The translations under genes and the position numbers were made by a program. The notes under the pieces are model-generated. The model worked only from the letters and a program-made list of their open reading frames with translations. It had not been told where the DNA came from and did no database searches. From the sequence record MK817115.1: a DNA stretch of 64,000 bases; one strand, 5' to 3'. This document shows, piece after piece, positions 36,527-54,397 of the stretch. Within the stretch, counting starts at the first letter, position 1. Each line of letters opens with the position of its first letter.

Positions 36527-36615
36527 GATAAAACTCCTTAATTTAGGAGGGAGAACCATTTCCCCCTCTCTATGTAAAACATTATACTTGATTCTAAGTA
36601 CTATGCAAGTACTTT

Positions 36616-36948
36616 TTACATTTTAATACCTGGATTCAGGTAGCGGTGAGATCCATATTCTGGATCGGTTTCGGTCCAGTACTGTAAATCTATAGTACCT
36701 TTAGCGTTAATCTTGTCTACCAGCTTATTCATCTTAGCGTATACTACATCAGCATCGATGCGTTTAAAGCCAGTAGCTTTAGTGAAGTAGTAGTGATTTG
36801 CTTCACTATCATTAAGGATATACCGAGCACCGTTTGCAGTCTGTGCGATAATGATTGAGTATTCTACTTCCCGATCCAGACCGTCGATGAATACAGATGA
36901 AACATTGGTACGGATGAAAGCTTTAACGATAGCGATTGAAGTACTCAT
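36616..36948 (-). CDS. early hypothetical protein
   Basis: 110 aa, AGGAG RBS. Confidence 0.8.
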   Translation of the reverse strand: MSTSIAIVKAFIRTNVSSVFIDGLDREVEYSIIIAQTANGARYILNDSEANHYYFTKATGFKRIDADVVYAKMNKLVDKINAKGTIDLQYWTETDPEYGSHRYLNPGIKM

Positions 36949-37100
36949 TTTGAATCTCCTAACTTTGTGGGCCGTCGCACCATTGCCGCCCTACGAGATA
37001 CATTATTGCAGTACTGATATACTTTGTCAATACTTTTTTATTAATAGTTTTAGTTCCACCAGCAGATAGTTACTCACCGTTATTAACTATATATTTTGGA

Positions 37101-37178
37101 TACACTCCTGCACCCAGTGGGCTAGTTTTTGTCTATGCGTATATAATAGCAAAGGGACTGACCGGAGTCAATCCCTTT
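37101..37178 (-). promoter_or_regulatory. class B unit: UNCG terminator + promoter + CCCANNGGGTGC
   Basis: Hairpin 37151-37178; TTGACT-17-TATTAT; motif 37110-37121. Confidence 0.8.
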
Positions 37179-37192
37179 TTTATTCTTTTTTG

Positions 37193-37393
37193 TTAGATGA
37201 TTCTCCAATCTTCTACGATCATGGTAAGATAACGGACCATCGATTCAAGTGATTCGAATTCCCGATAGTCTGCCGCTCCACCAGCGGTACAAGTACAGCC
37301 GATTAAACCATTTTGCAATTCCTTAATCTGTACATCGATAAGGTTGGCTTTAGCTTCTTTCAGTACTTCAACCAGGGCGATAGCGATAGACAT
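37193..37393 (-). CDS. early hypothetical protein
   Basis: 66 aa behind class A cassette. Confidence 0.8.
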   Translation of the reverse strand: MSIAIALVEVLKEAKANLIDVQIKELQNGLIGCTCTAGGAADYREFESLESMVRYLTMIVEDWRII

Positions 37394-37483
37394 AATGTTT
37401 TACTCCAAACTATTAGCGGGAGAACTATTCCCCCGCTCTATGTAAAACATTATACATTACTGGTTAGTACTGTCAAATAGTTT

Positions 37484-37741
37484 TTATGAAATATCTTCGA
37501 TGTAGTCGGCCCATTTCATTTTTTCAGTACTGTCAATGGCTACCGGATTATTTGGATCAAACCATTCACCATTACCGCAGTACATACCAACGGCTACGGT
37601 TTTATAGCCATCCTGGGCCGTACTCCACGACATTGCACGATAGATATGGCCTTTAACTGGTTGCAGTACTGGTAATGTTTTATGGTCTTCTACGTAGGCC
37701 ATAGCTTGAGGATTTACCCGATATTGTGTGAACTGTTCCAT
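37484..37741 (-). CDS. early hypothetical protein
   Basis: 85 aa with own promoter/RBS. Confidence 0.8.
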   Translation of the reverse strand: MEQFTQYRVNPQAMAYVEDHKTLPVLQPVKGHIYRAMSWSTAQDGYKTVAVGMYCGNGEWFDPNNPVAIDSTEKMKWADYIEDIS

Positions 37742-37817
37742 TATGTTTCCCCTTGTAGTTAGTAAAGTTATTACATCAGTACTATCAAGCTATGTCAATA
37801 GTACTGAAATAAAACTT

Positions 37818-38042
37818 TTAGATTAGATTATTGATGCCTGAAATGGTAGACTCACTTTCTTCTTTCTCCCATTGGCGGTAGTACTTCCACGCTTCATGAT
37901 AGGTGGCGATCAGTTCATCTTTTTGATCCTGAGTACATGCCAGTACTGAATCACTGTAAGCGGTGTTATAGATAGAATCGAATGATTTCTTCTCTTCTGC
38001 CAGGTTAGCTACTTCCCGCATCAGTTCATCAAAGTTAGCCAT
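37818..38042 (-). CDS. early hypothetical protein (acidic)
   Basis: Start trimmed to MANFDE. Confidence 0.8.
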   Translation of the reverse strand: MANFDELMREVANLAEEKKSFDSIYNTAYSDSVLACTQDQKDELIATYHEAWKYYRQWEKEESESTISGINNLI

Positions 38043-38110
38043 TTTAGTACTCCTTATTAGTGGGGGAGGATATCTCCCCCTATGCAAAACATTATACTTT
38101 GTTTTAGTTA

Positions 38111-38374
38111 TTATGCAAGTACTTTTTTCATATAAACATTAAATTCTACACCGCCGTAACCTTCTACGATGATATGTTTTGCGTTATCACGTTTGCACAT
38201 AGTGAAACCGTTGTTGATGTGTTCTGCATTTTCCAGGGCGACATCACCGATAGCGGCACATACGGCACTAATAACAGTATTCCGCAAAGTACTGGTATCA
38301 TTAGCGGTCATAGTAGTTTGCAGTACTACGTTGTCGTATACGTGTGCATTGATAGTGATTTCGATAGTGTTCAT
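38111..38374 (-). CDS. early hypothetical protein
   Basis: 87 aa behind class A cassette. Confidence 0.8.
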   Translation of the reverse strand: MNTIEITINAHVYDNVVLQTTMTANDTSTLRNTVISAVCAAIGDVALENAEHINNGFTMCKRDNAKHIIVEGYGGVEFNVYMKKVLA

Positions 38375-38460
38375 GGTGTATCTCCTGCACAGTCGGGAGA
38401 ACTATTCCCCCGCTCTATGTAAAACATTATACGTTAATCTAACTACAATGCAAGTACTTT

Positions 38461-38652
38461 TTAAATTTTATTTCCGATATAGTCCGGTCTATTCTTTTCG
38501 GTCATACGCTTTGCTAATGTTTGCATATGGCTTATTGCGTTTAATGTGTCTTCCTCCAGGGATGAATCAACATAATCAGGATCATTCTTCACCTTGCAAT
38601 GATTATGATAGCGTAGTACTGCCAGTACTTTTTTAACTTCTTCTACTGTCAT
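38461..38652 (-). CDS. early hypothetical protein
   Basis: 63 aa, ATGA-coupled. Confidence 0.75.
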   Translation of the reverse strand: MTVEEVKKVLAVLRYHNHCKVKNDPDYVDSSLEEDTLNAISHMQTLAKRMTEKNRPDYIGNKI

Positions 38653-38921
38653 AATAAGTACCCCACTTCGTTAGCTTTCAGGTTAGTATCAATCATCAGT
38701 GGATTTTTGTAGTTCACAAAACGATTAGTTTTCTCGATAGCGAATCCCATATAATCCAGCTTACTAACAGTACATTCATTCTTAAAAACTTCTTTCGCTG
38801 CATTGATGGCTGATTCAATTGATAACCGACCATCTAAGTTAATGTTTCCAAATGATCCACCAGCAGAAGTAGGATTACCGTTCATATCTTTAATGATCAT
38901 AGTAGCGGAGTAGCTAGACAT
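38649..38921 (-). CDS. early hypothetical protein
   Basis: 90 aa behind class A cassette. Confidence 0.8.
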   Translation of the reverse strand: MSSYSATMIIKDMNGNPTSAGGSFGNINLDGRLSIESAINAAKEVFKNECTVSKLDYMGFAIEKTNRFVNYKNPLMIDTNLKANEVGYLL

Positions 38922-39005
38922 AATTTTGTTTCCTTTTAGTATCGGGGAGAACTATTCTCCCCTTGATGTAAACTATTATACAGTACTAAGATACTTTGTC
39001 AATAC

Positions 39006-39227
39006 TTAATTACGTTTAAAATGATATGTGCCTTTATCATCCTGTACGCCCCATACTGATTTACCATCAACACCAGTGAAACCGGATTGTAATTCAATAT
39101 GGAAACCATTATTATCAACTACAAAAACTTTTTTATTTTCATCCCGATAACATTGATATTCTGAATCAACATTAAAGGCCGCATCATTCAGAAGATTGGA
39201 AGCGTAAATGCAAGTCATTGTAGTCAT
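39006..39227 (-). CDS. early hypothetical protein
   Basis: Start trimmed to MTTMTC. Confidence 0.8.
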   Translation of the reverse strand: MTTMTCIYASNLLNDAAFNVDSEYQCYRDENKKVFVVDNNGFHIELQSGFTGVDGKSVWGVQDDKGTYHFKRN

Positions 39228-39360
39228 GATTTTATTCCTTATTGCCAGGGAGAACCATTTCCCCCTCTCGATATAAAACATTATACTTGATTCTAAGTAC
39301 AATGCAAGTACTTTTTATCAAATACTTTAAAATAGTTTTCAGTACTGAATACTTATATAA

Positions 39361-39447
39361 TAGATACACTTATGCACCCTGTGGGTCAGTGAGTTATCTC
39401 TCAATGAATATATATTAGCAAAGGGACTGACCGGAGTCAATCCCTTT
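39361..39447 (-). promoter_or_regulatory. class B unit
   Basis: Hairpin 39420-39447; TTGACT-17-TAATAT; motif 39374-39385. Confidence 0.8.
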
Positions 39448-39458
39448 TTTAATCTTTT

Positions 39459-40043
39459 TTATCGTGTTATAGTTACGGCTTTTACATCACGCTTTTTATA
39501 GTACTGATTCCAGATATTGCGGGTTAAACCGTAATCAAGTACTTTAATAAGTCCATTACGATCCTGGCCGATATTCTGTTTTCTGATATCTCTTATCGTT
39601 AGTGTTGATAATGTATCATCGACGTGTTGTAGTGCATCAGCAAAGCGGTGCTGGCGTTCAATGGCATTACGTTTAATATTGTACTTTAATTCGTTGCACG
39701 CGTTAACGTGCTTCACACTGCCTTTACTTGCAGTACTCAACCGATCCATAACGATAAACATATTATCAGGATCGCATAAATGCATATGCACCTTTGCAAA
39801 GTACTGTTTCAATTGAGGGCGGTCATAGTCTAAAAAATTCCATACCTTACATTCAGTTTCATTTTGTTCTACACCCGCATCACAATTGGCGACCTTAATC
39901 ACTAACCGATCATTTAAAGCGAATACGATACGGGAAGAACCCGCCCCGATGATCTCCAGGCCAGCTAACCGACAAGCTGAAAGGATCTCTTTGTTGGTTT
40001 CCATTTCTGACAGTGTACGGATGAATTTAGTATAATTACGCAT
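39459..40043 (-). CDS. Ser/Thr protein kinase-like protein
   Basis: IGAGSSRIV (Gly loop), VIK, alphaC Glu, DIRKQN (catalytic loop), DYG; start trimmed to MRNYTK. Confidence 0.8.
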   Translation of the reverse strand: MRNYTKFIRTLSEMETNKEILSACRLAGLEIIGAGSSRIVFALNDRLVIKVANCDAGVEQNETECKVWNFLDYDRPQLKQYFAKVHMHLCDPDNMFIVMDRLSTASKGSVKHVNACNELKYNIKRNAIERQHRFADALQHVDDTLSTLTIRDIRKQNIGQDRNGLIKVLDYGLTRNIWNQYYKKRDVKAVTITR

Positions 40044-40074
40044 TGCATGTTCTCCTTGAGTTAATGAAACTATC

Positions 40075-40317
40075 TTACAGTACTTTACTATCAATGGCAA
40101 CCACTTTTTTCACACTAACCGCGTGAATCACTTCCTTAGTGTTTTTAGTACTGAATACTTTCGCTGTTCCTTGTTCTACTGCAATGCGATAACGACCGTT
40201 AACATCAACCATATTAATAAAGTCCGGTGTACTAAACCGAGTAGTACGGCATTTCAGTACTGTTAACAATTCCACCAGCGATGTAGTTTCTTTGATACGT
40301 TTTTCTAAAGTAATCAT
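40075..40317 (-). CDS. early hypothetical protein
   Basis: 80 aa with own promoter. Confidence 0.75.
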   Translation of the reverse strand: MITLEKRIKETTSLVELLTVLKCRTTRFSTPDFINMVDVNGRYRIAVEQGTAKVFSTKNTKEVIHAVSVKKVVAIDSKVL

Positions 40318-40375
40318 TTTGTTTTCCCCCGTGTTGGTATGTACATATAGTACTAAAACATTTGAGTACTGTCAA

Positions 40376-40594
40376 TTAGATAATAGAATATTTCTTTAGT
40401 GATAATGCGTCTTCTGTCGGTTGATATTCTACACCGTTCCCGTTATCAACCTTAGTGAGTAAACCTTTATCAATGAGTTTTTTGATGGTACGGTTTCCCT
40501 GTTGAAAACTGGTGAAGTGTGAATCATTACGAAAGGTATAACCGTGCTTCACTGCTTCATCAATAGTTTTCTTTTCGATTTTAGATAATTTCAT
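40376..40594 (-). CDS. early hypothetical protein (possible wHTH)
   Basis: Start trimmed to MKLSK; TIKKLIDKGLLTKV resembles a wHTH recognition helix/wing. Confidence 0.7.
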   Translation of the reverse strand: MKLSKIEKKTIDEAVKHGYTFRNDSHFTSFQQGNRTIKKLIDKGLLTKVDNGNGVEYQPTEDALSLKKYSII

Positions 40595-40650
40595 TTTGTT
40601 TCTCTCTCTGTGTTGGTATAGATACATAATACTAAAACAATTGAGTACTG

Positions 40651-40905
40651 TCAACGTGATATTAGTTTTATTTTTTTATTGTATTGTTGGTGTTCATATA
40701 GATTAATTTTTCCAGTACTCTCAATTACTATTCTATTGTTAGTGTCTACATCGATAACACGTAGTTTCCCGTTGCTTAACTTCCTGGGTAATAGACTACC
40801 ATTAATAAACTCATTAGCAAGCTGTACGGCCTTTGTGATGATTCTCTGTGGTGCTTTATAGTGTACCCGCAAGATATTATCTTTAGATAGTTGTACCTTC
40901 ATCAT
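40651..40905 (-). CDS. hypothetical protein, possibly ParE/RelE-like fold
   Basis: KA...PRKL...IDVDTNNRIV...LYEHQQYN pattern. Confidence 0.4.
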   Translation of the reverse strand: MMKVQLSKDNILRVHYKAPQRIITKAVQLANEFINGSLLPRKLSNGKLRVIDVDTNNRIVIESTGKINLYEHQQYNKKIKLISR

Positions 40906-40920
40906 TTTAGTTTATCCTAT

Positions 40921-40946
40921 AAAAAAAGGCGGGAACTGAACCCGCC
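40921..40946 (-). terminator. rho-independent terminator
   Basis: GGCGGG-7nt-CCCGCC + T7 on minus. Confidence 0.75.
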
Positions 40947-40969
40947 GTGTTGTTAGTACTGCAAAGTTA

Positions 40970-41374
40970 TTAGATAACCTGGCGGCGTTTACTGTATACT
41001 GTTACACGGTTTCCTTTACGGTCATGACGGATCTCTTTCTGGTTACGAATCAGTTCACTTGGACGCTTAAGGTTTGCCAGGTGATCCGCGTGAGTCCATG
41101 CATTTGCGTTAACTGTAACTTCAATATCAGAACCTTTCAAAAAGTCATCTTGAGCGTTCAGTACTTCAGCCAGTTCTTGAGCTTGCTTTAGTTCTGCTTC
41201 AGTAAGTACAGGCTCAGGTGAATTCACAATATCAGAGATCTCTTTGAACTGTACCGCCCAGCGTTGTCCTTTCGGTGCATCTTTGCCCATGTCTTTAAAT
41301 GTTTCACCTTCTTCACGAGCAACGATGCGAGCTTGTTCACGGGTAGCGAAGAATTTAGTAATCATGGTGTACAT
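40970..41374 (-). CDS. early hypothetical protein, paralog of 52987..53253
   Basis: FATREQARI...FKDMG...DRKGNRVTVY. Confidence 0.85.
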   Translation of the reverse strand: MYTMITKFFATREQARIVAREEGETFKDMGKDAPKGQRWAVQFKEISDIVNSPEPVLTEAELKQAQELAEVLNAQDDFLKGSDIEVTVNANAWTHADHLANLKRPSELIRNQKEIRHDRKGNRVTVYSKRRQVI

Positions 41375-41464
41375 CCTATTAGTTAAGTTAATTAGTACTA
41401 CAAGTTAGAGTCTATTATAAAGTACTATCTGGGCAATGTCAAATAGTACTTTAAATGGATTCTA

Positions 41465-41788
41465 TTACATGTCTTTTTTACGTTTTACATCGTAGTAACG
41501 AACTGTAATTTCTTTGTTGATCTCATCCTCAATTCTGTGTAGTACTTTCTCTTTCGGGTTGAAACCTATTACAGTTTCTTTAATGATCTCCAAGCCCGTG
41601 TATTCGCCTTGTGTACCGTAACCGTAAGTAAAGGTTTCATGTCCCAGGTCTTCCCAGCGGTCACCAATCAATGCAGACACGTAGCATGAGTGGTAAGTAT
41701 TGCCGTGGCTATCAGTCCACCGATTAACTTTAATGTCAAAGGAAGTTACAATTTTCATTTCTACTTTCTGGGCAAGGATCATAGTCAT
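41465..41788 (-). CDS. early hypothetical protein, paralog of 47657..48001
   Basis: RW...GNTY...F.YGYG...DVKRKKD. Confidence 0.85.
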   Translation of the reverse strand: MTMILAQKVEMKIVTSFDIKVNRWTDSHGNTYHSCYVSALIGDRWEDLGHETFTYGYGTQGEYTGLEIIKETVIGFNPKEKVLHRIEDEINKEITVRYYDVKRKKDM

Positions 41789-41875
41789 TTTAATTTCTCT
41801 CTTTTTGTTAGGAAGGGAACCATTCCCCTCACTTGATGTAAACTATTATACAGTACTAAGATACTTTGTCAATAC

Positions 41876-42151
41876 TTAAGTATTGTAAATGTCGTGAATA
41901 GTGATAAAGTTTTTACGACCGTAAACATGTAAATCAGTATCAATGTAGTGCTTATCAAGTACATCCTCGACGCTTAAAGCCGTGTCGTGAATATCTTCAT
42001 AGAATTGTGGATCTACAATCTTACTTAAATCATCCGGCGTTAACTTATCATTGAGCCATTGCACCGCCTGGATATCTGCATCACGTTTCCAGTCTTCCAG
42101 GTTAGTAGTCAGTACTTGCTCGATTTCGTTAGCTGTCAGTAGAATCCGCAT
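41876..42151 (-). CDS. early hypothetical protein (acidic)
   Basis: 91 aa behind class A cassette. Confidence 0.8.
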   Translation of the reverse strand: MRILLTANEIEQVLTTNLEDWKRDADIQAVQWLNDKLTPDDLSKIVDPQFYEDIHDTALSVEDVLDKHYIDTDLHVYGRKNFITIHDIYNT

Positions 42152-42240
42152 TTTAATTTCTCTCTTTGTTAGGTGGGGAACTATTCCCCACTTGATGTAA
42201 AATATTATACAGTACTAAAAACTATTGTCAAACTATTTTA

Positions 42241-42441
42241 TCAAATTGTTTCCCATTTCATGTTACCCGCTTTACGCTGTGAAACAGGAATAAACATGTT
42301 ATTAATGTTACTAATATAACCGACCTGTAAGTCACGCTGTGAACCATACGCCCGACTTGCTGCATTTTTAGCACCGCGTTCTGATTTATAAACGCCGCTG
42401 GATACTGTAAAGCCTACTACACCGAAAGTAAAATGTTTCAT
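42241..42441 (-). CDS. early hypothetical protein
   Basis: 66 aa with promoter and GAGG RBS. Confidence 0.8.
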   Translation of the reverse strand: MKHFTFGVVGFTVSSGVYKSERGAKNAASRAYGSQRDLQVGYISNINNMFIPVSQRKAGNMKWETI

Positions 42442-42492
42442 TTTGTATTCCTCTTTGTGGTTGATGTAAGTATTATACTCGTTTAATTTCTA

Positions 42493-42643
42493 TTGTCAAA
42501 CTATTTTATCAGGGGAGGTTTTCGTATGTCTTACTCCTGGACTACTTAACGGGGTTACTTATTTCGTTCCCCGTCCTGATGTAAAACATTATACTTGATT
42601 CTAAGTACAATGCAAGTACTTTTTAAAAATAGTTTTCAGTACT
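42493..42643 (-). repeat. ORF-less ~150-bp module (copy 1), candidate sRNA
   Basis: Near-identical to 52299-52451. Confidence 0.75.
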
Positions 42644-42670
42644 TGATAGTACTAGCCACCAGCATATAAT

Positions 42671-42751
42671 AGATACATTTATGCACCCTGTGGGTTAGAT
42701 TGTTTCTATGCATATATAATAGCAAAGGGACTGACCGGAGTCAATCCCTTT
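42671..42751 (-). promoter_or_regulatory. class B unit
   Basis: Hairpin 42724-42751; TTGACT-17-TATTAT; motif 42683-42694. Confidence 0.8.
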
Positions 42752-42762
42752 TTTAAATCTTT

Positions 42763-42912
42763 TTAAACTTGTTTTGGGTTGCGATATGTGATAGCGTTCG
42801 GGTACATTTGTTTAATGTTATTCCATGCCTGGTTAACATTGTAACCACTTGATCGAATCAGTTGGTTACTTCCTACGCCCTGAAACACTACTTCGAATAA
42901 GAATTCTTTCAT
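42763..42912 (-). CDS. small early protein (49 aa)
   Basis: Hand-translated MKEFLFEVVFQG...; ATGA-coupled. Confidence 0.65.
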   Translation of the reverse strand: MKEFLFEVVFQGVGSNQLIRSSGYNVNQAWNNIKQMYPNAITYRNPKQV

Positions 42913-48082: not shown

Positions 48083-48226
48083 TTACTTACTTTTTGCTTT
48101 CTTTGCTGCTTCCACCTGGTCGGCCCATTCTTTACCCCATACTTGTAAATTATAATGGTACTGGCAAAGTGCAACGCCCCGCTTTAAACCAGTAATAGAT
48201 TTTTTACCACATTGACAAGTTTTCAT
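48083..48226 (-). CDS. small putative Zn-binding protein (47 aa)
   Basis: Hand-translated MKTCQCG...LCQYHY; behind class A cassette. Confidence 0.6.
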   Translation of the reverse strand: MKTCQCGKKSITGLKRGVALCQYHYNLQVWGKEWADQVEAAKKAKSK

Positions 48227-48312
48227 ATTAGTTTCCTCATTATCAGGGAGAACCATTTCTCCCCTTGATGTAATGTATTATACTTTATCTGATTTACTTT
48301 GCAAGTACTTTT

Positions 48313-48540
48313 TTAATTTAATTCATCCAGGCAAAGGATACGCTCAACGCCCAAATCAGTTAAACTAATCGACGGCACTTGATAGGTTTCAATGTATGCT
48401 ACACTTGCCCACTGACCGAACTCATTAACGGCCCATTTATCCATTGCAAAATGCAATTCCGCACCTTTCTTATTAGTAATTACAGCAACAGTAGAAGAAT
48501 TGCCAGTAGTACCAGTTACGCGAGTGATTACGATAGCCAT
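48313..48540 (-). CDS. early hypothetical protein
   Basis: Start trimmed to MAIVIT. Confidence 0.8.
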   Translation of the reverse strand: MAIVITRVTGTTGNSSTVAVITNKKGAELHFAMDKWAVNEFGQWASVAYIETYQVPSISLTDLGVERILCLDELN

Positions 48541-48777
48541 TGTTTTAATTCCTTTGATTTGGAAGGAGAACCGTTTCCCCCTCTCGATGTAAAACATTAT
48601 ACGCTAATCTCTTAATCGTGCAAGTACTTTTTATTACTTTTTGCAAAATACTTTAAACGCACTCAATCGCGTTCTTACAGCCTTAACGCCACCAGCTAGG
48701 GCAATGCATCAGATAATCAGTTTAATGCGTTAGAATCGATTCTAGGCGGTGCTGGTGGCCTGGTAAACGTTAAACAC

Positions 48778-48803
48778 AAAAAAGCCCACTTATGCAGTGG
48801 GCT
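48778..48803 (-). terminator. terminator, AGCCCAC...GTGGGCT type
   Basis: 8-bp stem + T6 on minus. Confidence 0.75.
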
Positions 48804-48824
48804 AGTGATTCAGTACTTTAATTG

Positions 48825-49307
48825 TTATGCTTCCACTTTGCGATGAGCTTCGATCCATTCCTCGCGAGTCATACCGCTGGAGTTAATCGCATCCAGTACT
48901 ACCGCAATGCAGTTACCACGCACCGGAATCAGATATTCTTCCCCGTTGTCCAGTACTACCGCTACACGTTTTTGAATCCATTTTTTAGGCTTAGATTCCG
49001 GCTTATCTTCCCCATACTTAACCGCCAGGGCTTTTTGTGCCATCTCTGTAACTACTTCCAGATCCAATCCAACTACTGCCGCCTGAATACTTTCAATTGT
49101 TGCTTGTAGTTCTGCTTCACGGGCCGCCTTTGCCGCTTCAATTTCTGCCGCTTTATTTGCTTGTAGTTCTTTCGCAGTACTATAAGCGATGTTAAAATTA
49201 TTGCGTACCGCTTTCATGGTATCGTTATCCAGATCAGCCAGGATCTCTGCCGCGACGTTAGTTTCATTTGCTACCAGTGCTTTGATGAATGATTTTACAT
49301 TAGCCAT
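48825..49307 (-). CDS. H-NS/MvaT-like protein (coiled coil + C-terminal domain)
   Basis: Ala/Glu-rich helical N-half; C-term LDNGEEYLIPVRGNCIAVVLDAINSSGMTREEWI aligns by eye with H-NS [35 protein letters not shown]. Confidence 0.5.
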   Translation of the reverse strand: MANVKSFIKALVANETNVAAEILADLDNDTMKAVRNNFNIAYSTAKELQANKAAEIEAAKAAREAELQATIESIQAAVVGLDLEVVTEMAQKALAVKYGEDKPESKPKKWIQKRVAVVLDNGEEYLIPVRGNCIAVVLDAINSSGMTREEWIEAHRKVEA

Positions 49308-49510
49308 TTTATAAATCCTCAATTAAAGTTTAGTTTACGTTGGTTAGTGTATCAAAGTTTTCTCGACGTGTCCAGTTTTTCGTTCGACTTACTGGCGGTC
49401 TACTTAGTGCTCCCCGTCTTGATGTAATATATTCTACGCCTTTTTGCGGTAATGTCAACTATTTTTTAAAACTATTTTCAAAGTATCTCAGTACTACGAT
49501 ACTACAAAAA

Positions 49511-49534
49511 CAAAAAAAGCCCACCAGGTGGGCT
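49511..49534 (-). terminator. terminator, AGCCCAC...GTGGGCT type
   Basis: 7-bp stem + T7 on minus. Confidence 0.75.
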
Positions 49535-49540
49535 ATGTAC

Positions 49541-49771
49541 TTAATCAGTAATTAAAACATTAAACACTTTATCATTTAACGTTATGGGTGTACTGCTACC
49601 AGGCTTGAGATCAGTTAGTACACCTGCAATAGCTTTTTCATTGGCGACCTTTCCAGTGTCCAACAGTACTACAGTACTGATAAGATTAACGCTCGTTTCA
49701 ATATCATAATGCACGGCGTTAAGTAGTTGTGTAGTACTGCTTTCGTTAAGTAAAACAATTCGCTTAGTCAT
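49541..49771 (-). CDS. early hypothetical protein
   Basis: 76 aa. Confidence 0.75.
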   Translation of the reverse strand: MTKRIVLLNESSTTQLLNAVHYDIETSVNLISTVVLLDTGKVANEKAIAGVLTDLKPGSSTPITLNDKVFNVLITD

Positions 49772-49792
49772 GATGTTACCCCGTAGTATCTA

Positions 49793-50092
49793 TCAACGGC
49801 AATTAATAACGCCAGTATGAGTTACTTTCTCAGTATCCATAACAGTGACCGAACCGCGTTTAGTACTTGCATCGTAATAAATTGTCGTGCTACCGTTTTC
49901 GTCTTCTTCATGGAACGGGCCGTTTTTAAATGCTTCCGGCTGGATCTCTAAATCCTTTAAAACAATCTCGCCAGTACTTTCATCGGTCATTGCAACAGTG
50001 CACTGAATGAATTTTTCACTACTTACATCTAATGACGCATTAACAGCGAAAGAGGAAACAGATAAAGCCAGGGCGATGATTGCAATTTTCAT
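49793..50092 (-). CDS. putative secreted/periplasmic protein
   Basis: Signal peptide MKIAIIALALSVSSFAVNA. Confidence 0.75.
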   Translation of the reverse strand: MKIAIIALALSVSSFAVNASLDVSSEKFIQCTVAMTDESTGEIVLKDLEIQPEAFKNGPFHEEDENGSTTIYYDASTKRGSVTVMDTEKVTHTGVINCR

Positions 50093-50177
50093 TTGATTAT
50101 CCTTAGTTACCAGGGGGAACCGCTCCCCCCTTGCGATGTAAAATATTATACAGTACTAAAAACTAATTGCAAGTACT

Positions 50178-50414
50178 TTATGATTTTTTATAAAACATTT
50201 CGGCAGTGATATTTTTACCCGTTGGTTGTACTTTATCCAGAATTTTTTGATGTCCAGGGCGACCAAATGAATAAGATCCGTAAACCGTAAACCAGTAGTT
50301 ACCCTCAGTGTTTACATGTACAGCACAATAGGGAACGCCCCGCGATTCATCACTAGTAAAGTGTGATACCGTACCCGTTACATTCGCAGACGTTGATTTG
50401 ATTTGTTCGACCAT
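50178..50414 (-). CDS. early hypothetical protein
   Basis: 78 aa behind class A cassette. Confidence 0.8.
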   Translation of the reverse strand: MVEQIKSTSANVTGTVSHFTSDESRGVPYCAVHVNTEGNYWFTVYGSYSFGRPGHQKILDKVQPTGKNITAEMFYKKS

Positions 50415-50522
50415 TTTCTTATTCCTTAGTTACCAGGGGAACCGCTCCCCCTATGCAAAACATTATACGCGTTTAAAAACTAATAGCAAGTATTTTAATA
50501 AAAAGTATTTGGAAAATAATTG

Positions 50523-50591
50523 TTGACAAGTGCATCCAGTACTGGCATAATTACTACATCAAGACGAAACAGTCACTAACCCACCGGGTGC
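50523..50591 (+). promoter_or_regulatory. class B unit, plus strand, no ORF
   Basis: TTGACA-17-CATAAT; CCCACCGGGTGC 50580-50591. Confidence 0.75.
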
Positions 50592-50621
50592 CGAGATCCG
50601 TCTATTAAATGATTCAGTACT

Positions 50622-50650
50622 AAAAAAAGAAAGGGGATCAATTGATCCCC
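50622..50650 (-). terminator. rho-independent terminator (possibly bidirectional)
   Basis: GGGGATCAATTGATCCCC, strong U-tract on minus. Confidence 0.75.
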
Positions 50651-50656
50651 TCGTTG

Positions 50657-50878
50657 TTATTTTGTAAGGTATAAACAGAAGTCACCTTTATTTGCTACGC
50701 CGCCAGTGTAACGCGAGGAATAGTTAGAAACGTCCTGGACTTCTGCTATTACCAGGGTATCATCATTCAATTCGTCGCAGAAGCAAACGGCTGGATCTTG
50801 TACGCCGATATTGTCGGCATGTTCCCGCATAGATTTAACCAGTGCTTCAAGTTGGGAAAGAGTAGTGATATTAGCCAT
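50657..50878 (-). CDS. early hypothetical protein
   Basis: Start trimmed to MANITT. Confidence 0.8.
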   Translation of the reverse strand: MANITTLSQLEALVKSMREHADNIGVQDPAVCFCDELNDDTLVIAEVQDVSNYSSRYTGGVANKGDFCLYLTK

Positions 50879-50961
50879 TTTATTTTCCTCATTACCAGGG
50901 AGAACCATTTCTCCCCTTGATGTAAACTATTATACAGTACTAAAAACTAATTGCAAGTACT

Positions 50962-51243
50962 TTAACTGTAAGATCCGCAACGGTCGCAGTAGTGCCCCTC
51001 GTCATCGTCAACGAATTGACCAACGAAATTATCTACTTTCGCTTTCAGGTTATTATAATCGTTTTCTACTTCATTTAAACGCTTCTGGTAGTATTCCAGT
51101 GCTTTAAGATATGCCGCATCAGCAGTTTTCTCCTGCATAGCTAAATTCATGCCACGCGTTTCATCGTACAGCCAAAAACCATCGGTGCACTGGCTAATAG
51201 ATAATGACTTGCTTAGTACTGTATAGTTAATTACTTTACTCAT
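50962..51243 (-). CDS. early hypothetical protein
   Basis: GFWLYDETRGMNLAM + coiled coil; start trimmed to MSKVIN. Confidence 0.8.
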   Translation of the reverse strand: MSKVINYTVLSKSLSISQCTDGFWLYDETRGMNLAMQEKTADAAYLKALEYYQKRLNEVENDYNNLKAKVDNFVGQFVDDDEGHYCDRCGSYS

Positions 51244-51301
51244 TAGATAAACCCTCAATAAAGGCGGGAACCATTCCCCGCCATTGTTACAGTACTGAAT
51301 A

Positions 51302-51541
51302 TTACATTCCAACCATTGCAGCACGGATCGCAGTAGTGCTATACTTAAAGCCGTCCGGCGTTGTAGTAGTACCGTTGGCTTTTAATCTGCGGTACATGCA
51401 TTCCGCTGCAATATCTTTAGTTCTACTTTGTGCGATACAACTTTGTGCAAGCCGATACAATGACTCACCGTTATTAATCCATAAGGAAACATTCCAATGA
51501 GTTTTGTTTTTGTGCCCGTTGTAAGTTTTAGTACTAGCCAT
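51302..51541 (-). CDS. early hypothetical protein, paralog of 53339..53578
   Basis: GHKNKTHWNVSLWINN...TPDGFKYSTTAIRAAMVGM. Confidence 0.85.
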   Translation of the reverse strand: MASTKTYNGHKNKTHWNVSLWINNGESLYRLAQSCIAQSRTKDIAAECMYRRLKANGTTTTPDGFKYSTTAIRAAMVGM

Positions 51542-51633
51542 TTTTTTTAATCCTCGTTTGAGCGGGGAACCACTCCCCGCCTCGATATAAAGTATTATAC
51601 GCTTTTAAACTTAGTTTGCAAGTACTTTTTAAA

Positions 51634-52245
51634 TTAATATTCGATTGATTCTACTACGCCATCAATAACATTGAATTGATATTCGTTACCCTCAATCAGT
51701 GCTGTAATGTTTTCAGTAGTGAATTGATCCTCATATGCATTCTCTAAATCACGGTACAACTTGCGGGATAATTCACGAATAGTTTCAGTGAGTAGTTCCT
51801 CAAGCTCATTAACTAACGTTTCTTGTTTTGCGGTTAAATCAGTGTAAGCCGATTCAATGTACCCGCTTACAGTGTTTTCATGCGAGTAGTGGGAGTGAGA
51901 ACGCTTTACACTCATCGCCAAATCATCTTCATTCAGCAGGTGACGGATTGAGCGATACTTAGTTAATGCTCTTACCTTGCGTAAAAACTTCACTGCGTCA
52001 ACGTGGTCAGTACTGATTGATGCACCGTCACCCTGGGACCAAAAACCACTGAATTGTATTTCAGCGTCATTAATGCCATATTCCGGCAATACTGTTTCTT
52101 TATAGTGTTCAATTTCACTTTCAGAAAAATAATCGTCGTTTGAGTTTTTTTCACGTTCCCGAACCAGTTCGATAGCTGACGTTTTTTGTTCTGCGTTCAA
52201 TTCAGAAAAATCCATAACATAAGTAGTAGTAGTGATAGTTTTCAT
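51634..52245 (-). CDS. conserved protein of the family annotated 'antitoxin of toxin-antitoxin stability system' (function unverified)
   Basis: FSGFWSQGDGAS motif; N-term T.Y...EL...K..A; C-term LYR.LE..Y......I..NEY.F. Confidence 0.55.
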   Translation of the reverse strand: MKTITTTTYVMDFSELNAEQKTSAIELVREREKNSNDDYFSESEIEHYKETVLPEYGINDAEIQFSGFWSQGDGASISTDHVDAVKFLRKVRALTKYRSIRHLLNEDDLAMSVKRSHSHYSHENTVSGYIESAYTDLTAKQETLVNELEELLTETIRELSRKLYRDLENAYEDQFTTENITALIEGNEYQFNVIDGVVESIEY

Positions 52246-52298
52246 TTTGTAACCCTCATTCAGTAGTTTATGTAAGTATTATACGCTTTTAAAAACAA

Positions 52299-52451
52299 TT
52301 GTCAAACTATTTTATCAGGGGAGTTTTTCGTGTGCCTTACTCCTGGGCTACTTAACGGGAAGTTACTTATTTCGTTCCCCGTCCTGATGTAAAACATTAT
52401 ACGCCTTTAAACATAGTTTGCAAGTACTTTTTAAAAATAGTTTTCAGTACT
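52299..52451 (-). repeat. ORF-less ~150-bp module (copy 2), candidate sRNA
   Basis: Near-identical to 42493-42643. Confidence 0.75.
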
Positions 52452-52467
52452 GAATAGTAAAAAGGTA

Positions 52468-52640
52468 TTGACAGCACTATCCAGTACTGGTATAATATAC
52501 CCCATGACAACAGCTAACCCACCGGGTGCACAATTGTAACTGTACTAAACTACTTTTTCTATAGATACACTCCCGCACCCTATGGGCTACGGCTTATCTG
52601 CCAATGAATACATTATGCCAGTACTGACAAAATAAGTCAA
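52468..52640. promoter_or_regulatory. convergent pair of class B promoters
   Basis: Plus TTGACA-17-TATAAT with motif 52518-52529; minus TTGACT-17-CATAAT with motif 52575-52586. Confidence 0.8.
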
Positions 52641-52670
52641 TACCGGCAATTGTAAAGATTTGTAAACTAC

Positions 52671-52901
52671 TTATACTGCAATCGCGTCCAGGCTATAATA
52701 ATAATAAGTGCCGTATTGGTGTACTTTATTACCTTTTATTTCAGTACTGAATGAATCCGAACGATTGGCATATGATGTTAATTTATAGTACTTTACTTTA
52801 CTAATACGTTGCCATACACCGCAGATCCGCTGTAAGTAAGTAGTTTTATTTGTGGTAGTATCTTTTACGGCTTTCAATTCGATCATATACATAGTGGTCA
52901 T
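52671..52901 (-). CDS. early hypothetical protein
   Basis: 76 aa behind class A cassette. Confidence 0.8.
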   Translation of the reverse strand: MTTMYMIELKAVKDTTTNKTTYLQRICGVWQRISKVKYYKLTSYANRSDSFSTEIKGNKVHQYGTYYYYSLDAIAV

Positions 52902-52986
52902 TTTATTACTCCTTGCTTTAGTGGGGAACTATTCCCCACCTGATATAAAGTATTATACGCGTTTAAACTTAGTTTGCAAGTACTTT

Positions 52987-53253
52987 TTATTCAAGTACTG
53001 CGATCTTTTTAATACGGTACACGGTCACGCGGTTGCCCTTTCGGTCGAGCTTTATTTCTACCACTCGACGCGATACACTATCAGGACTTTTCAACGCCGC
53101 TAACCAGTACTGTAATGATCTGGCGGTACTACGCTTTACAATGGCCCAACGTTTACCACGTTCCGATTGTACGCCCATATCTTTAAACGTTGCCCCGTCC
53201 TGGCGTGCGGCGATCCGAGCTTGTTCACGCGTCGCAAAATACTTAATATTCAT
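52987..53253 (-). CDS. early hypothetical protein, paralog of 40970..41374
   Basis: YFATREQARI...DRKGNRVTVY; start trimmed to MNIKYF. Confidence 0.85.
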   Translation of the reverse strand: MNIKYFATREQARIAARQDGATFKDMGVQSERGKRWAIVKRSTARSLQYWLAALKSPDSVSRRVVEIKLDRKGNRVTVYRIKKIAVLE

Positions 53254-53338
53254 GCTGTTGCCCTTATCGTTGGTGTATGAATAAAACACTATTATAAAGT
53301 ACTATCGCAAAAAATGATAGTACTTTAAATAAATTCTA

Positions 53339-53578
53339 TTACATTCCAACCATTGCAGCACGGATCGCAGTAGTGCTATATTTGAATCCGTCCGGTGTTT
53401 TATCTTGTCCAGTCTGTTCTAAAAATAACATCATATGACGGGCCGCATCATTACGATTAGTATTGGCGGCAATAAAGTCCTGGGCCAACCGGTATAATGA
53501 TTCATCGTTATTAATCCAAAGGCTTACATTCCAATGAGTTTTGTTTTTGTGACCTAAGAACATTTTTGATTTAGCCAT
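53339..53578 (-). CDS. early hypothetical protein, paralog of 51302..51541
   Basis: GHKNKTHWNVSLWINNDE; start trimmed to MAKSKM. Confidence 0.85.
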   Translation of the reverse strand: MAKSKMFLGHKNKTHWNVSLWINNDESLYRLAQDFIAANTNRNDAARHMMLFLEQTGQDKTPDGFKYSTTAIRAAMVGM

Positions 53579-53671
53579 TTTTTTAATCCTCTTATATAGT
53601 GGGGAACTATTCCCCACCTGATGTAAAACATTATACGCTTTTAAACATAGTTTGCAAGTACTTTATTAAAC

Positions 53672-54034
53672 TTATTCGTAAATTTTGCCACTGTCAGCCC
53701 ATACCAGGAAACGAGGCATATTATCCCATGCATCTTGTTTTAAATTTAAACCGTGTAATACTTCTGTACTTTCCATTCCTGGTACTGGTTTACTATACAC
53801 CGCAAATAGTTCACCCATATACTGATAAGCCATCGTTAAATCACTGGCGATCATCTTATGGATCATCGCATCAAGCATCACGGTAGCGGCGTATTGTTCA
53901 CGCTTAAGCGGTAACATTGCAATAAGTTCCCGATAAGCTGAAATGTGAATTTTTACCGTTTCAGCCGGAAGACCTTTCATCTCTTCACGGAAGTTAACCA
54001 GGTTAGCAATAATTTTATTGATTTGAGTCGCCAT
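53672..54034 (-). CDS. first gene of the early region, hypothetical
   Basis: Behind class A cassette; start MATQIN (or MKT at 54043). Confidence 0.8.
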   Translation of the reverse strand: MATQINKIIANLVNFREEMKGLPAETVKIHISAYRELIAMLPLKREQYAATVMLDAMIHKMIASDLTMAYQYMGELFAVYSKPVPGMESTEVLHGLNLKQDAWDNMPRFLVWADSGKIYE

Positions 54035-54397
54035 CGTTTTCATCTCTCTTACAGTGTAGCGGGAAGTGTTCCCGCTCTCGATGTAAAACATTATACGCTT
54101 TTAAACATAGTTTGCAAGTACTTTCTACATGTACTTTTAAAATAGTTTTCTTTCTATATAGGAGTACTATTATTCAGTACTGCAACCATCCAGGGGAACT
54201 ATCTTTCTATATAGTAGTACTATTATTCAGTACTGAATCAATCAACCAAATCACTACTACACCCCGTAAAACGGCCTCAGACGCATTCTAACGCATTAAT
54301 ACACCCAAGCTATACATTTGCACCATTCCAATCATTCCAGGGCTTTACGGGCCGTTTAAACGCGTTAAATTATTTTCAATTATTTTGTTTTTAGGTA

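Follow-up and report, generated by a model that had tools for sequence, protein, structure and literature searches.

The last 64 kb of the genome of Escherichia phage vB_EcoM_phAPEC6 (Asteriusvirus; a jumbo phage of E. coli, 352.6 kb), hereafter the window, contain an array of small genes among which a cassette of promoter, hairpin and ribosome-binding site recurs many times. Our results make it reasonably probable that this is an early gene array read by the host RNA polymerase from a direct terminal repeat (DTR), that most of its genes have one cassette each, that the RNA hairpin caps the 5′ end of the mRNA and that cassette homology drives gene swapping. An earlier note on this DNA had read the cassettes as mRNA-stabilising leaders and recombination joints, and that interpretation as a whole is partly supported here.

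The existence of the array is confirmed. An nhmmer profile finds 23 canonical cassettes, all on the minus strand at 36,529–54,126, and a covariance model (R1) gives 23 too, with scores of 55–97 bits (Table 1). Three long-leader variants and about six promoter-only copies are also present, so that the 'about 25' copies previously placed at 36533–54125 are correct, and the limits agree. In total, the terminal repeat contains about 33 strong promoters of nearly the same sequence; a transcribed hairpin and a ribosome site follow in 23 cases. Twelve promoters match the sigma-70 consensus perfectly (12/12) on one strand within 20 kb, and all covariance-model matches in the whole 352.6-kb record lie within record positions 325,127–342,724, with one weak exception. 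The perfect promoters, the R1 scores and this confinement rule out chance. About 49 small genes make up the array, most with their own expression cassette; the cassette is ∼85 bp long and recurs every 200–800 bp.

Table 1. Cassettes and related features, in window coordinates; canonical hairpins are written as arm-loop-arm, and scores are those of covariance model R1.
Feature	Position	Strand	R1 (bits)	Remarks
Canonical, GAGGGGGAA-ATGG-TTCTCCCTC	36529..36617	-	82.5	before gp491c
Canonical, AGCGGGGGAA-TAG-TTCTCCCGCT	37398..37485	-	72.1	
Canonical, GGGGGAG-ATATC-CTCCCCC	38043..38127	-	75.1	
Canonical, CGGGGGAA-TAG-TTCTCCCG	38375..38462	-	79.7	
Canonical, GGGGAGAA-TAG-TTCTCCCC	38925..39010	-	73.0	breakpoint vs EC22.5-2 and G17
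Canonical, AGGGGGAA-ATGG-TTCTCCCT	39228..39316	-	85.2	joint of TH47 deletion
Canonical, GAGGGGAA-TGG-TTCCCTTC	41793..41880	-	70.5	breakpoint
Canonical, GTGGGGAA-TAG-TTCCCCAC	42154..42240	-	75.2	breakpoint in 3 relatives
Canonical, GGGGAGAA-ATGA-TTCTCCCC	43397..43484	-	86.1	
Canonical, AGGGGAA-ACGTC-TTCCCCT	43671..43756	-	54.9	weakest; -10 TATAGT or TTATAG
Canonical, GGGGAGAA-TAG-TTCTCCCC	45449..45535	-	75.5	
Canonical, AGGGGAAA-CGG-TTTCCCCT	45883..45970	-	84.8	insertion joint, TH47 and EC22.5-2
Canonical, GGGGAGAA-ATGA-TTCTCCCC	46470..46557	-	94.2	
Canonical, GGGGAGAA-ATGA-TTCTCTCC	46699..46786	-	86.0	
Canonical, GGGGAGAA-ATGG-TTCTCCCT	48226..48313	-	86.7	cassette and gene 85% identical in rV5-like W70
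Canonical, GAGGGGGAA-ACGG-TTCTCCTTC	48544..48632	-	81.8	
Canonical, AGGGGGGA-GCGG-TTCCCCCT	50093..50181	-	85.1	TH47 chimeric joint
Canonical, TAGGGGGA-GCGG-TTCCCCTG	50415..50498	-	72.9	short leader
Canonical, GGGGAGAA-ATGG-TTCTCCCT	50878..50965	-	97.3	top score; insertion joint
Canonical, GGCGGGGAG-TGG-TTCCCCGCT	51543..51630	-	83.2	
Canonical, GGTGGGGAA-TAG-TTCCCCACT	52902..52988	-	80.5	other hairpin types at relatives' orthologous genes
Canonical, GGTGGGGAA-TAG-TTCCCCACT	53580..53666	-	84.9	EC22.5-2 insertion with 80-nt repeat overlap
Canonical, AGCGGGAA-CAC-TTCCCGCT	54039..54126	-	74.7	first by transcription direction
Variant, same promoter and ACATC start, longer different leader	42529..42624	-	52.1	no ORF until next promoter
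Variant, promoter and start unchanged, long leader	49375..49467	-	36.4	ahead of gp528c
Variant, duplicate of 42.6-kb long-leader module	52335..52432	-	58.6	repeat D8, 87% identical
Promoter-only copy	42441..42508	-		12/12 consensus, without hairpin
Promoter-only copy	44096..44172	-		
Promoter-only copy	44877..44955	-		
Promoter-only copy	45153..45223	-		
Promoter-only copy	52245..52314	-		
Promoter-only copy	55345..55414	-		upstream of array
Promoter-less cassette-type hairpin, GGCGGGGAA-TGG-TTCCCGCC, and Shine–Dalgarno	51244..51320	-	27.6	then TTTATT; scored terminator-like
Equivalent of ∼20.7-kb DTR	35695..55760	.		holds whole array; mapped from G17, phAPEC6 ends inferred

The 5′ part of the cassette consists of an A-tract, a −35 element (TTGCAA, TTGACA or TTGCAT), a 16-nt spacer, TATAAT preceded by G and an ACAT start region; the 3′ part consists of a G-rich hairpin followed by ∼19 nt that include the Shine–Dalgarno site and lead to the ATG. 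The spacer, earlier measured as 16 bp in three copies, is 16 nt in 22 of 23, and the copy at 43,756 is better read as having 17 nt and TATAGT. Both start regions named before (ACATC and ACATA) occur, as do ACATG, ATATC and GCATA. All 23 stems are perfect, and their length is 7–10 bp, as had been claimed; the loops (UAG, AUGG, AUGA, CGG, GCGG, CAC, AUAUC and ACGUC) range over 3–5 nt instead of 3–4 nt. The two hairpins given as examples (GAGGGGGAA-ATGG-TTCTCCCTC at 36.6 kb and AGGGGGGA-GCGG-TTCCCCCT at 50.1 kb) are genuine. A predicted single-stranded tail of 3–8 nt separates the start from the hairpin, the 3′ end of which lies 17–23 nt (mode 19) from the ATG in 21 of the 23 copies.

Comparison of the stems supports a structure confined to one strand, for which RNA is the simplest reading, over a DNA cruciform or an operator bound by protein. 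The 23 stems contain 16 G·T pairs and one T·G pair on the sense strand (the copies share descent, so counts across them are not independent). Among 54 distinct hairpins from nine loci, 30 G·T versus 0–1 A·C pairs occur in core stems, A·C being confined to spurious outer extensions, and every single-base difference between orthologous cassettes yields G·U. The covariation score of 123 distinct cassettes is 0.317 versus 0.230 after shuffling, and none of 500 shuffles reaches 0.317. The mean fold z-score is −2.4, and folding is slightly more favourable for the sense strand than for the antisense strand (−13.3 versus −12.3 kcal/mol, p = 0.026). Furthermore, the hairpin is retained in distant genera with different stems (e.g. 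GGGTAAGC/GCTTACCC and GACAGGAGA/TCTCTTGTC). The wobble asymmetry, the covariation and the sense fold thus point to RNA, and the earlier description of stem mismatches as sense-strand G–U pairs, favouring RNA over a cruciform, holds.

The position of the array was mapped through G17, a linear record that includes its repeats. It contains 27 cassettes at 835–19,075, and these occur again at an offset of 350,149 (54 matches), giving a DTR of 20,668 bp; the DTR of the Sharanji phage, determined by PhageTerm, is likewise 20,668 bp (PMC11895373). G17 position 1 corresponds to window position 35,695, and G17 position ∼20,668 to ∼55,760. By this mapping, which also gives the putative DTR ends in phAPEC6, the cassette array fills a DTR of ∼20.7 kb.

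We propose that the DTR carries an array of early genes that would be read by the host RNA polymerase. For most of the genes, the cassette provides a UP-like A-tract and a near-consensus sigma-70 promoter with its fixed spacer; early timing and a start at ACAT are predicted. The transcript would begin with 3–8 unpaired nt, continue with the 7–10-bp G-rich hairpin and then ∼19 nt with the Shine–Dalgarno site, ending at the ATG. Most probably the hairpin would cap each short early mRNA at its 5′ end, and a ribosome immediately next to it would leave little naked leader for RNase E or RppH. Classical 5′-hairpin protection against RNase E or RppH needs ∼0–4 unpaired 5′ nt; for this putative mRNA-stabiliser role the predicted 3–8 nt would be borderline. 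A simple insulator role is unsupported because in silico deletion of the hairpin leaves Shine–Dalgarno accessibility unchanged (0.68 versus 0.66).

Other functions of the hairpin have to be weighed against capping. It is unlikely that the hairpin RNA is instead a common tag for a phage or host protein (candidates being an endonuclease, a repressor of translation or an antiterminator that recognises a promoter-proximal RNA hairpin as lambda N does boxB), by which all terminal-repeat genes would be switched off or processed together, with stabilisation being secondary. Such a tag would fit the fixed position (3–9 nt after the predicted start, ∼19 nt ahead of the ATG), the closing GAA…UUC pairs and G-run kept in most copies, GGAG in 9 of 23 5′ arms, the single occurrence of this hairpin type without a promoter and its retention in two unrelated phage families. 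However, the loops are free to vary in length and sequence, the stems of other genera are wholly different, and a Pfam search of the genome, run without a positive control, gives no RegA or RegB match. It is extremely improbable that the inverted repeat works as double-stranded DNA after the start, whether bound as an operator by a dimeric repressor or extruded as a cruciform to block or modulate early transcription or to set off recombination. Although every canonical promoter has the repeat, at a classical operator position (∼+5 to +27), A·C mismatches on the other strand are expected of a cruciform, against the 30 G·T to 0–1 A·C count. The stems also covary without being conserved, both within the array and across genera, which does not fit a sequence-specific DNA-binding protein. 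Very unlikely, too, is a true PeSL of the published type, which would terminate or attenuate upstream transcription and so isolate each gene transcriptionally. PeSLs are described for RB49/phi1, PST/T4 and nt-1/KVP40 (Arbiol et al. 2010, PMC2839356; Comeau et al. 2014, PMC4122927); RB43 and RB16, to which the earlier note assigned them, are not named in the 2014 paper. In phAPEC6 the G-run/C-run stem is similar to the GN-loop-CN stems of RB49 (PMC4122927), a PeSL stem was shown to stop transcription as efficiently as rrnB T1 (PMC2839356), and TTTATT follows one promoter-less copy. But none of the 23 canonical hairpins is followed by a U-tract or called terminator-like, about nine canonical terminators lie separately on the same strand within the array, the RB49 genome has no match to the cassette model, and a hairpin downstream of its own promoter would attenuate its own transcript too. 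The hairpin was thus rejected as an intrinsic terminator.

The second part of the proposal concerns gene swapping. In no relative does a single piece span more than 54% of the 20-kb array, although the shared parts are 92–95% identical. Comparison with four relatives gives 26 unique events, the breakpoints of which do not avoid the cassettes: 29 of 52 lie in canonical cassettes, which occupy 13.9% of the region (p = 2e-12). In 9 of the 26 events there is a repeat overlap of 40–108 nt (i.e. one cassette versus two flanking copies), chimeric cassettes with the crossover within shared cassette sequence sit at deletion joints in relatives, and in 30 of 60 orthologous pairs the two genes are preceded by hairpins of different types. 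These comparisons support the claim that rearrangement joints between relatives fall at the cassettes and that the exchange unit is a single gene. In Asteriusvirus relatives, single genes with their cassette have been deleted, inserted, replaced or re-paired with other cassettes, and the recurring ∼85-bp cassette would be the source of homology, since the same sequence is met every 200–800 bp. Alternatively, the cassettes could mark joints and not make them, if gene swapping can proceed by any route and selection spares only the joints that fall between genes; cassette likeness would then come from tandem duplication of the array and convergence of strong promoters on the consensus. We give this a minor but real chance. 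Cassettes are about half of the array's non-coding DNA, and against non-coding DNA only the enrichment is modest (67% versus 49%, p = 0.010); much of the coincidence could reflect selection that keeps genes intact. Moreover, 17 of 52 breakpoints lie outside any repeat, including at terminators and at one cassette-less gene junction (44,428–44,437), and some joints are complex mosaics. The repeat overlaps, the chimeric cassettes and the different cassette types on orthologous genes argue against mere marking, as do cassette-to-cassette joins in wastewater contigs, which are possibly assembly errors at repeats. Homology at the cassettes probably causes the joints.

The cassette occurs in 63 phage records, including other RaK2-like jumbo phages and unrelated rV5-like phages. 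In the rV5-like phages W70 and A5-4, single-gene units are 68–89% identical and their order is shuffled; cassette-plus-gene units are common to these phages and the Asteriusvirus group.

A terminal repeat full of small early genes with their own promoters is also found in Bacillus phage SPO1 (the host-takeover module of its terminal redundancy) and phage T5 (its terminal-repeat pre-early genes). In these modules many small early genes are packed together, each or nearly each with a strong host-type promoter and a strong ribosome site, and are read by unmodified host polymerase as soon as infection begins. We know of no description of a conserved transcribed hairpin cassette or of cassette-mediated shuffling in either. 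The leaders of ompA and T7 gene 10 likewise have a stable hairpin near the mRNA 5′ end and upstream of the ribosome site, which slows 5′-end-dependent decay. Stabilising hairpins of this type begin within 0–4 nt of the 5′ end, whereas that of phAPEC6 follows 3–8 predicted unpaired nt and is repeated on more than 20 promoters.

The likeness to PeSLs is closer in composition than in layout. Both are repeated ∼70–100-bp intergenic cassettes in which an AT-rich tract lies upstream of a near-consensus sigma-70 early promoter, and both contain a G-run/C-run stem-loop, a Shine–Dalgarno site and a start codon; both cluster among small genes of unknown function, and insertion, deletion and replacement joints between close relatives fall in them. 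By contrast, PeSL stem-loops lie mostly between −35 and −10 or over −10, with transcription termination demonstrated (PMC2839356), whereas that of phAPEC6 would be inside the transcript, downstream of the predicted start and fixed ∼19 nt from the ATG, without a U-tract and separate from real terminators. The spacer is 16 nt versus 17 in PeSLs, and phAPEC6 belongs to the RaK2-like jumbo phages rather than the T4-like phages, its array filling the DTR. The earlier label 'PeSL-like' thus suits the behaviour at recombination joints but not the layout, and RB49 is unmatched. Early promoters of the same RpoD type are predicted in a comparable region in relatives from both cassette-carrying lineages. 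For CBB, 18 with an UP element are listed, clustered ahead of short hypothetical genes and within the terminal repeat (PMC5259590), and for rV5, 33 (PMC3606486). Unlike the present account, the parts of these two papers considered here list promoters only, with no leader hairpin, fixed cassette or link to gene shuffling described. New here are the placement of the array in the DTR, the cassette in other RaK2-like and in rV5-like phages, the stem covariation, the restriction of non-Watson–Crick stem pairs to G·U on the sense strand and the concentration of breakpoints in cassettes.

The cassette was delimited with a profile search (nhmmer, 16 seed copies), which recovers 23 full-length copies, and with a covariance model built on these 23 copies (hereafter R1), which scores them at 55–97 bits. 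R1 also matches three copies that have the same promoter with a longer, different leader, about six promoter-only copies and one promoter-less hairpin. The window corresponds with 100% identity to positions 288,599–352,598 of Escherichia phage vB_EcoM_phAPEC6 (MK817115.1, 352,598 bp; Asteriusvirus). Over the whole 352.6-kb record of phAPEC6, all R1 matches lie within record positions 325,127–342,724 (window 36,529–54,126) except one weak match of 33.5 bits. In all 23 copies an A-tract lies upstream of a near-consensus sigma-70 promoter, and a Shine-Dalgarno site with ATG opens a reading frame of 47–133 codons. Scanning the minus strand of the 20 kb for the sigma-70 consensus yields 12 promoters that match it perfectly (12/12). 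The cassette promoters are almost certainly host-type; transcription start, timing and RNA-level functions are predicted. The copy number, coordinates, 16-nt spacer and ACAT motif given in the earlier note agree with the nhmmer, R1 and consensus scans. Its description of the stems as 7–10 bp and G-rich also stands (23/23 copies, all uninterrupted), but the loops, put there at 3–4 nt, reach 5 nt.

Parts of the cassette and other elements in and around the array (window positions)
Element	Position	Strand	Content	Basis
Cassette, part 1		minus	stop codon of upstream gene inside A-tract (AAAAAGTAC)	direct reading
Cassette, part 2		minus	-35 box TTGCAA, TTGACA or TTGCAT, 16 nt, then G+TATAAT
Cassette, part 3		minus	GTTTT-ACATC or close variant
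Cassette, part 4		minus	G/A-rich 5' arm, loop of 3–5 nt, C/T-rich 3' arm
Cassette, part 5		minus	short A-rich stretch including Shine-Dalgarno site, then ATG
Terminator (example)	40,946–40,928	minus		terminator call
Terminator (example)	48,803–48,783	minus		terminator call
Terminator (example)	49,534–49,518	minus		terminator call
Terminator (example)	50,652–50,631	minus		terminator call
Second repeat family	37,143–37,178; 42,716–42,751; 46,055–46,090; also near 39,440	minus	12-bp terminator-like hairpin (AAAGGGATTGACTCCGGTCAGTCCCTTT), TTGACT -35 in stem, TATTAT 17 nt downstream
Hairpin-less promoters	40,347–40,375; 40,626–40,654	minus	TTGACAGTACTCAAxTGTTTTAG...
Long-leader modules	42,529–42,624; 52,335–52,432	minus	cassette promoter, ACATC start, two-part longer leader
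Insertion point in relatives	44,428–44,437		~320 bp at a gene junction
Promoter-less hairpin	51,263–51,282	minus	GGCGGGGAA-TGG-TTCCCGCC, then TTTATT and Shine-Dalgarno site
Phased repeat array	54,864–55,019		degenerate, 8-bp-phased, CGTCTAGC-like units

An Rfam search of window 30–64 kb gives no family at threshold; its sole listed match is Trp_leader at 48,776–48,840 (24.5 bits, with a threshold of 41 bits; E=0.69). Promoters are not mentioned in the text of the phAPEC6 paper, a literature search for Asteriusvirus transcription start-site data returned nothing, and a search of an incomplete library found no paper describing this cassette. In the passages searched, the genome papers of rV5 and CBB report sigma-70 promoters in the matching regions and say nothing of a leader hairpin or cassette.

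The genes served (gp491c–gp539c) are all small, on the minus strand and annotated as hypothetical. Among ten of the larger products, Pfam recognises a GNAT acetyltransferase and a DksA/TraR zinc finger, plus a kinase match below threshold, and nothing else.

Our results further indicate that the array fills the direct terminal repeat (DTR). In G17, a relative whose linear record includes the repeats, R1 gives 54 matches, i.e. 27 cassettes at 835–19,075 and the same 27 at 350,984–369,224. With an offset of 350,149 between the two sets in a record of 370,817 bp, the DTR comes to 20,668 bp, and direct comparison finds the sequence from 350,150 onward 100% identical to that from 1 onward. For Asteriusvirus Sharanji, PhageTerm is reported to give a repeat of the identical length, 20,668 bp (PMC11895373). 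Also, blastn places one cassette at about twice as many positions in 366–384 kb records as in ~348–352 kb ones. The G17 duplication, the Sharanji repeat and this doubling with record size together locate the array in the DTR, and this location is new. Transferred from G17, the DTR of phAPEC6 would run from window 35,695 (G17 position 1) to about 55,760 (repeat end). The GC content is 0.36–0.41 in this putative DTR (35,695–55,760) versus 0.30–0.33 in the DNA to its left (1–35,000), which would fit a possible gene exchange with higher-GC phages. Just upstream of the first cassette, it also contains the phased repeat array. A further compositional feature extends over the whole window (1–64,000): the AGTACT palindrome has 270 copies, a 12.6-fold excess over the 21.5 predicted by base composition, and is found in every 8-kb bin, and CAGTACTG has 58 copies against 0.6 expected. 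The excess is present in both coding and non-coding DNA, and 32 of the 125 copies in 36.4–54.3 kb lie inside cassettes.

We then asked at which level the hairpin acts. The cassette leaders are more stably folded than their dinucleotide-shuffled counterparts (mean z -2.4), and the sense fold is slightly better than the antisense fold (-13.3 vs -12.3 kcal/mol; Wilcoxon p=0.026). A slid-register control on the window's own copies could not tell the registers apart, as G-runs can pair with C-runs in several of them. Cassettes were therefore gathered from nine further loci, giving 123 distinct sequences that were compared with 500 shuffles. Paired cells amount to 88.9% (83.8±0.6% in shuffles), cells altered on both sides to 62 (24.6±4.4) and the covariation score to 0.317 (0.230); none of the 500 shuffles is as high in any of the three, although, the copies being related by descent, neither these counts nor the pair counts given below are independent events. 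In this larger and more diverse alignment the true register exceeds all slid registers on covariation. In other genera, hairpins whose stems are unrelated occupy the same place: Serratia phage BF has GGGTAAGC/GCTTACCC and GACAGGAGA/TCTCTTGTC, and Salmonella phage 7t3 has GGGGGAA-ACATC-TTCCCCC.

The mismatches are informative about the strand. Non-Watson-Crick pairs in the 23 stems are one-sided (16 G·T and one T·G), as the earlier note had observed in reading them as G-U pairs on the sense strand. A finder that gives G·T and A·C equal treatment detects 54 distinct hairpins with 30 G·T pairs; their 11 A·C or C·A pairs all fall in chance extensions outside the core stem. Where orthologous cassettes differ by a single base, the substitution is C/T in the 3' arm or A/G in the 5' arm, and a G·U pair preserves the stem. 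A DNA cruciform would show A·C mismatches on the other strand, whereas the core stems have 30 G·T to at most one A·C (p=3e-8). A site for a sequence-specific DNA-binding protein is incompatible with the observed covariation, which such a protein would not tolerate. Since neither DNA-level explanation accommodates these patterns, the case is strong, though short of proof, that selection acts on the sense-strand hairpin. Its selection as RNA is the simplest reading and quite probable. The preference for an RNA structure over a cruciform voiced in the earlier note is thus supported by both the one-sided wobble pairs and the covariation.

What the hairpin does may be approached from its geometry. 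In 23/23 copies it lies downstream of the predicted start, beginning 8–14 nt past the -10 box, and the distance from its end to the ATG is 17–23 nt in 21 of them (mode 19); its base would presumably lie near the 5' boundary of the footprint of a bound ribosome. By sequence, an intrinsic terminator appears improbable: a U-tract follows none of the 23 hairpins (tails are CTAAAT, ACTAAT, GGTAAT and similar), none receives a terminator-like call, and the terminator scan places about nine canonical hairpin plus T-tract terminators at other sites on this strand of the array. A role as a simple insulator has no in silico support, as predicted Shine-Dalgarno accessibility is the same with or without the hairpin, both for native genes (0.68 with the hairpin vs 0.66 when deleted) and for 23×22 swapped gene combinations (0.646 vs 0.641). 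Our best guess, to which we give a little under an even chance, is that the hairpin protects short early mRNAs from 5'-end-dependent decay, aided by the adjacent ribosome. However, the unpaired 5' tail predicted for the transcript, 3–8 nt, speaks against 5'-end protection. The hairpin would begin 3–9 nt from the 5' end if the transcript starts at the sixth nucleotide after the -10 box, and two nucleotides closer if at the eighth. The main rival is that the hairpin is a common protein-binding tag; searches of the whole phage record for RegA and RegB (Pfam PF01818 and PF10715) gave no match, and the control genomes gave none either.

Nowhere else is the genome as mosaic as in the cassette region. 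Shared parts are 92–95% identical, yet the largest single collinear block that any relative has in common with the 20 kb spans at most 54% of it. Chained blastn alignments of window 34–57 kb against the relatives SHEFM2K, TH47, EC22.5-2 and G17 reveal 26 unique rearrangements in the array, i.e. 52 breakpoints. Canonical cassettes (±15 nt), which occupy 13.9% of the region, contain 29 of them (p=2e-12); six lie in other repeated promoter or terminator elements, eight in plain intergenic DNA and nine in coding DNA, several of these within a few nucleotides of a gene end. Under a fairer null restricted to non-coding DNA, of which cassettes already make up 49%, the breakpoint share is 67% (p=0.010), so that the enrichment is modest and the coincidence alone is not proof of cause. 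Further evidence comes from the structure of the joints: (i) in nine of the 26 events the repeat overlap is 40–108 nt, with a single cassette in one phage versus two copies flanking an extra gene in the other; (ii) at the 50,181–50,411 deletion in TH47, the single cassette follows the upstream phAPEC6 cassette through promoter and hairpin and then the downstream one from the shared CCCCTGGTAACTAAGG; and (iii) the hairpin differs in 30 of 60 orthologous gene pairs, often being of another cassette type, and the replacement hairpins are all perfect except at one gene with a promoter-only copy in the orthologues. These overlaps, the chimeric cassette and the switched hairpins point to exchange within cassettes. 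Wastewater contigs (Logan) also contain cassette-to-cassette joints (e.g. 46,559 to 50,962 and 48,609 to 45,912), which could be either real variants or repeat assembly errors. We consider it quite probable that the cassettes are the usual sites of exchange, and are somewhat less sure that their homology causes the joints. In line with the recombination joints proposed in the earlier note, rearrangement joints between relatives coincide with the cassettes (29/52 breakpoints, overlaps and chimeric cassettes).

Some gene gain in the array bypasses the cassettes, given that SHEFM2K and TH47 carry an insertion at a junction with neither a cassette nor another repeat. Two near-identical hairpin-less promoters flank a 92-codon gene that is missing in SHEFM2K and TH47; the joint overlap is 62–72 nt, and this is a further repeat-bounded gene loss. 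The second repeat family has its -35 box in the stem, so that stem-loop and promoter overlap, as in published promoter-early stem-loops (PeSLs), and a conserved non-coding stretch follows. The two long-leader modules, candidate small RNAs, are 87% identical and are followed ~120 nt downstream by the next promoter, with no ORF in between; Rfam gives nothing at either. The promoter-less, cassette-type hairpin lies between gp534c and gp533c, exactly at a G17 breakpoint, and may be either a decayed cassette or a weak terminator.

One 76-nt cassette matches 63 phage records by blastn. Carriers include (i) Asteriusvirus phages of E. coli and Salmonella; (ii) RaK2-like jumbo phages, i.e. Salmonella phages 7t3, SE_PL and PHA46, Klebsiella phage fENko-Kae01 (with the match annotated within direct terminal repeats), the Eneladusvirus phages BF, fHe-Yen9-04 and pEa_SNUABM_12, 47 and 50, and, listed among them, Erwinia phages pEa_SNUABM_44 and 49; and (iii) the rV5-like Vequintavirinae A73, A5-4, muut and LTH01. 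On whole records R1 finds at least 10 copies in 7t3, at least seven in BF and at least six in A5-4, and a model search of W70, another rV5-like phage, finds two strong and several weaker copies. An exact-pattern scan of IMG/VR returns five contigs only (three of ~350–366 kb, one of 109 kb and one of 33 kb), so the motif appears to be narrow in distribution. About ten single-gene units of the window recur in W70 and A5-4 with 68–89% DNA identity, in a different order and mostly bounded by cassettes, and in one unit common to phAPEC6 and an rV5-like phage the cassette is nearly base-for-base the same, spacer included. A tentative and rather doubtful extension of these findings is that the cassette is a shared plug standard, i.e. 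a promoter-hairpin-ribosome-site adapter kept by at least two unrelated lineages of E. coli myoviruses (RaK2-like jumbo phages and rV5-like Vequintavirinae). Single early genes would then move between them by homologous recombination in co-infection and be expressed at once, and the hairpin would serve as a common RNA handle that coordinates the whole terminal-repeat gene set.

If true, cassette-mediated modular gene shuffling is not peculiar to T4-like phages, and would be a general route by which large lytic phages renew host-takeover genes, here across families and inside a terminal repeat. The cassette is also a compact natural expression part (~85 bp with strong promoter, leader hairpin and ribosome site), and its dozens of natural variants suit direct assay of promoter strength, mRNA life and context independence. 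For annotation, the cassette can serve as a marker of the predicted early regulon and of the terminal repeat in Asteriusvirus genomes, whose public records are mostly permuted circles with unmarked ends.

PeSLs were described in the T4-like phages RB49/phi1 and then PST/T4 and nt-1/KVP40 as composite promoter-terminator motifs (PMC2839356, PMC4122927). The earlier note had named RB43 and RB16 as PeSL phages; neither name occurs in the 2014 PeSL paper (PMC4122927). Like PeSLs, the cassettes combine a near-consensus sigma-70 early promoter and its AT-rich upstream tract with an adjacent stable G-run/loop/C-run stem-loop, and close on the 3' side with a Shine-Dalgarno site and start codon. They are likewise concentrated in hyperplastic regions of small genes annotated as hypothetical, and contain the insertion, deletion and replacement joints between close relatives. 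In PeSLs, however, the stem-loop is found 'in various positions', with the interval from -35 to -10 and the -10 box itself as the commonest sites, and one stem terminates as well as rrnB T1 (PMC2839356), whereas the cassette stem-loop lies downstream of the predicted start, not within or over the promoter, and probably differs in function too. The jumbo-phage host lineage, the location inside a terminal repeat and the sharing across families are further differences. The RB49 genome gives no R1 match at E<=0.01, a search whose weight is lowered by its fast first-look filter. The label 'PeSL-like' in the earlier note thus holds for a repeated linker for modular shuffling with shared promoter, stem and Shine-Dalgarno site, and not for stem position or a match in RB49. 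On these sequence features, the cassette may best be filed as a variant akin to PeSLs rather than as a member of them.
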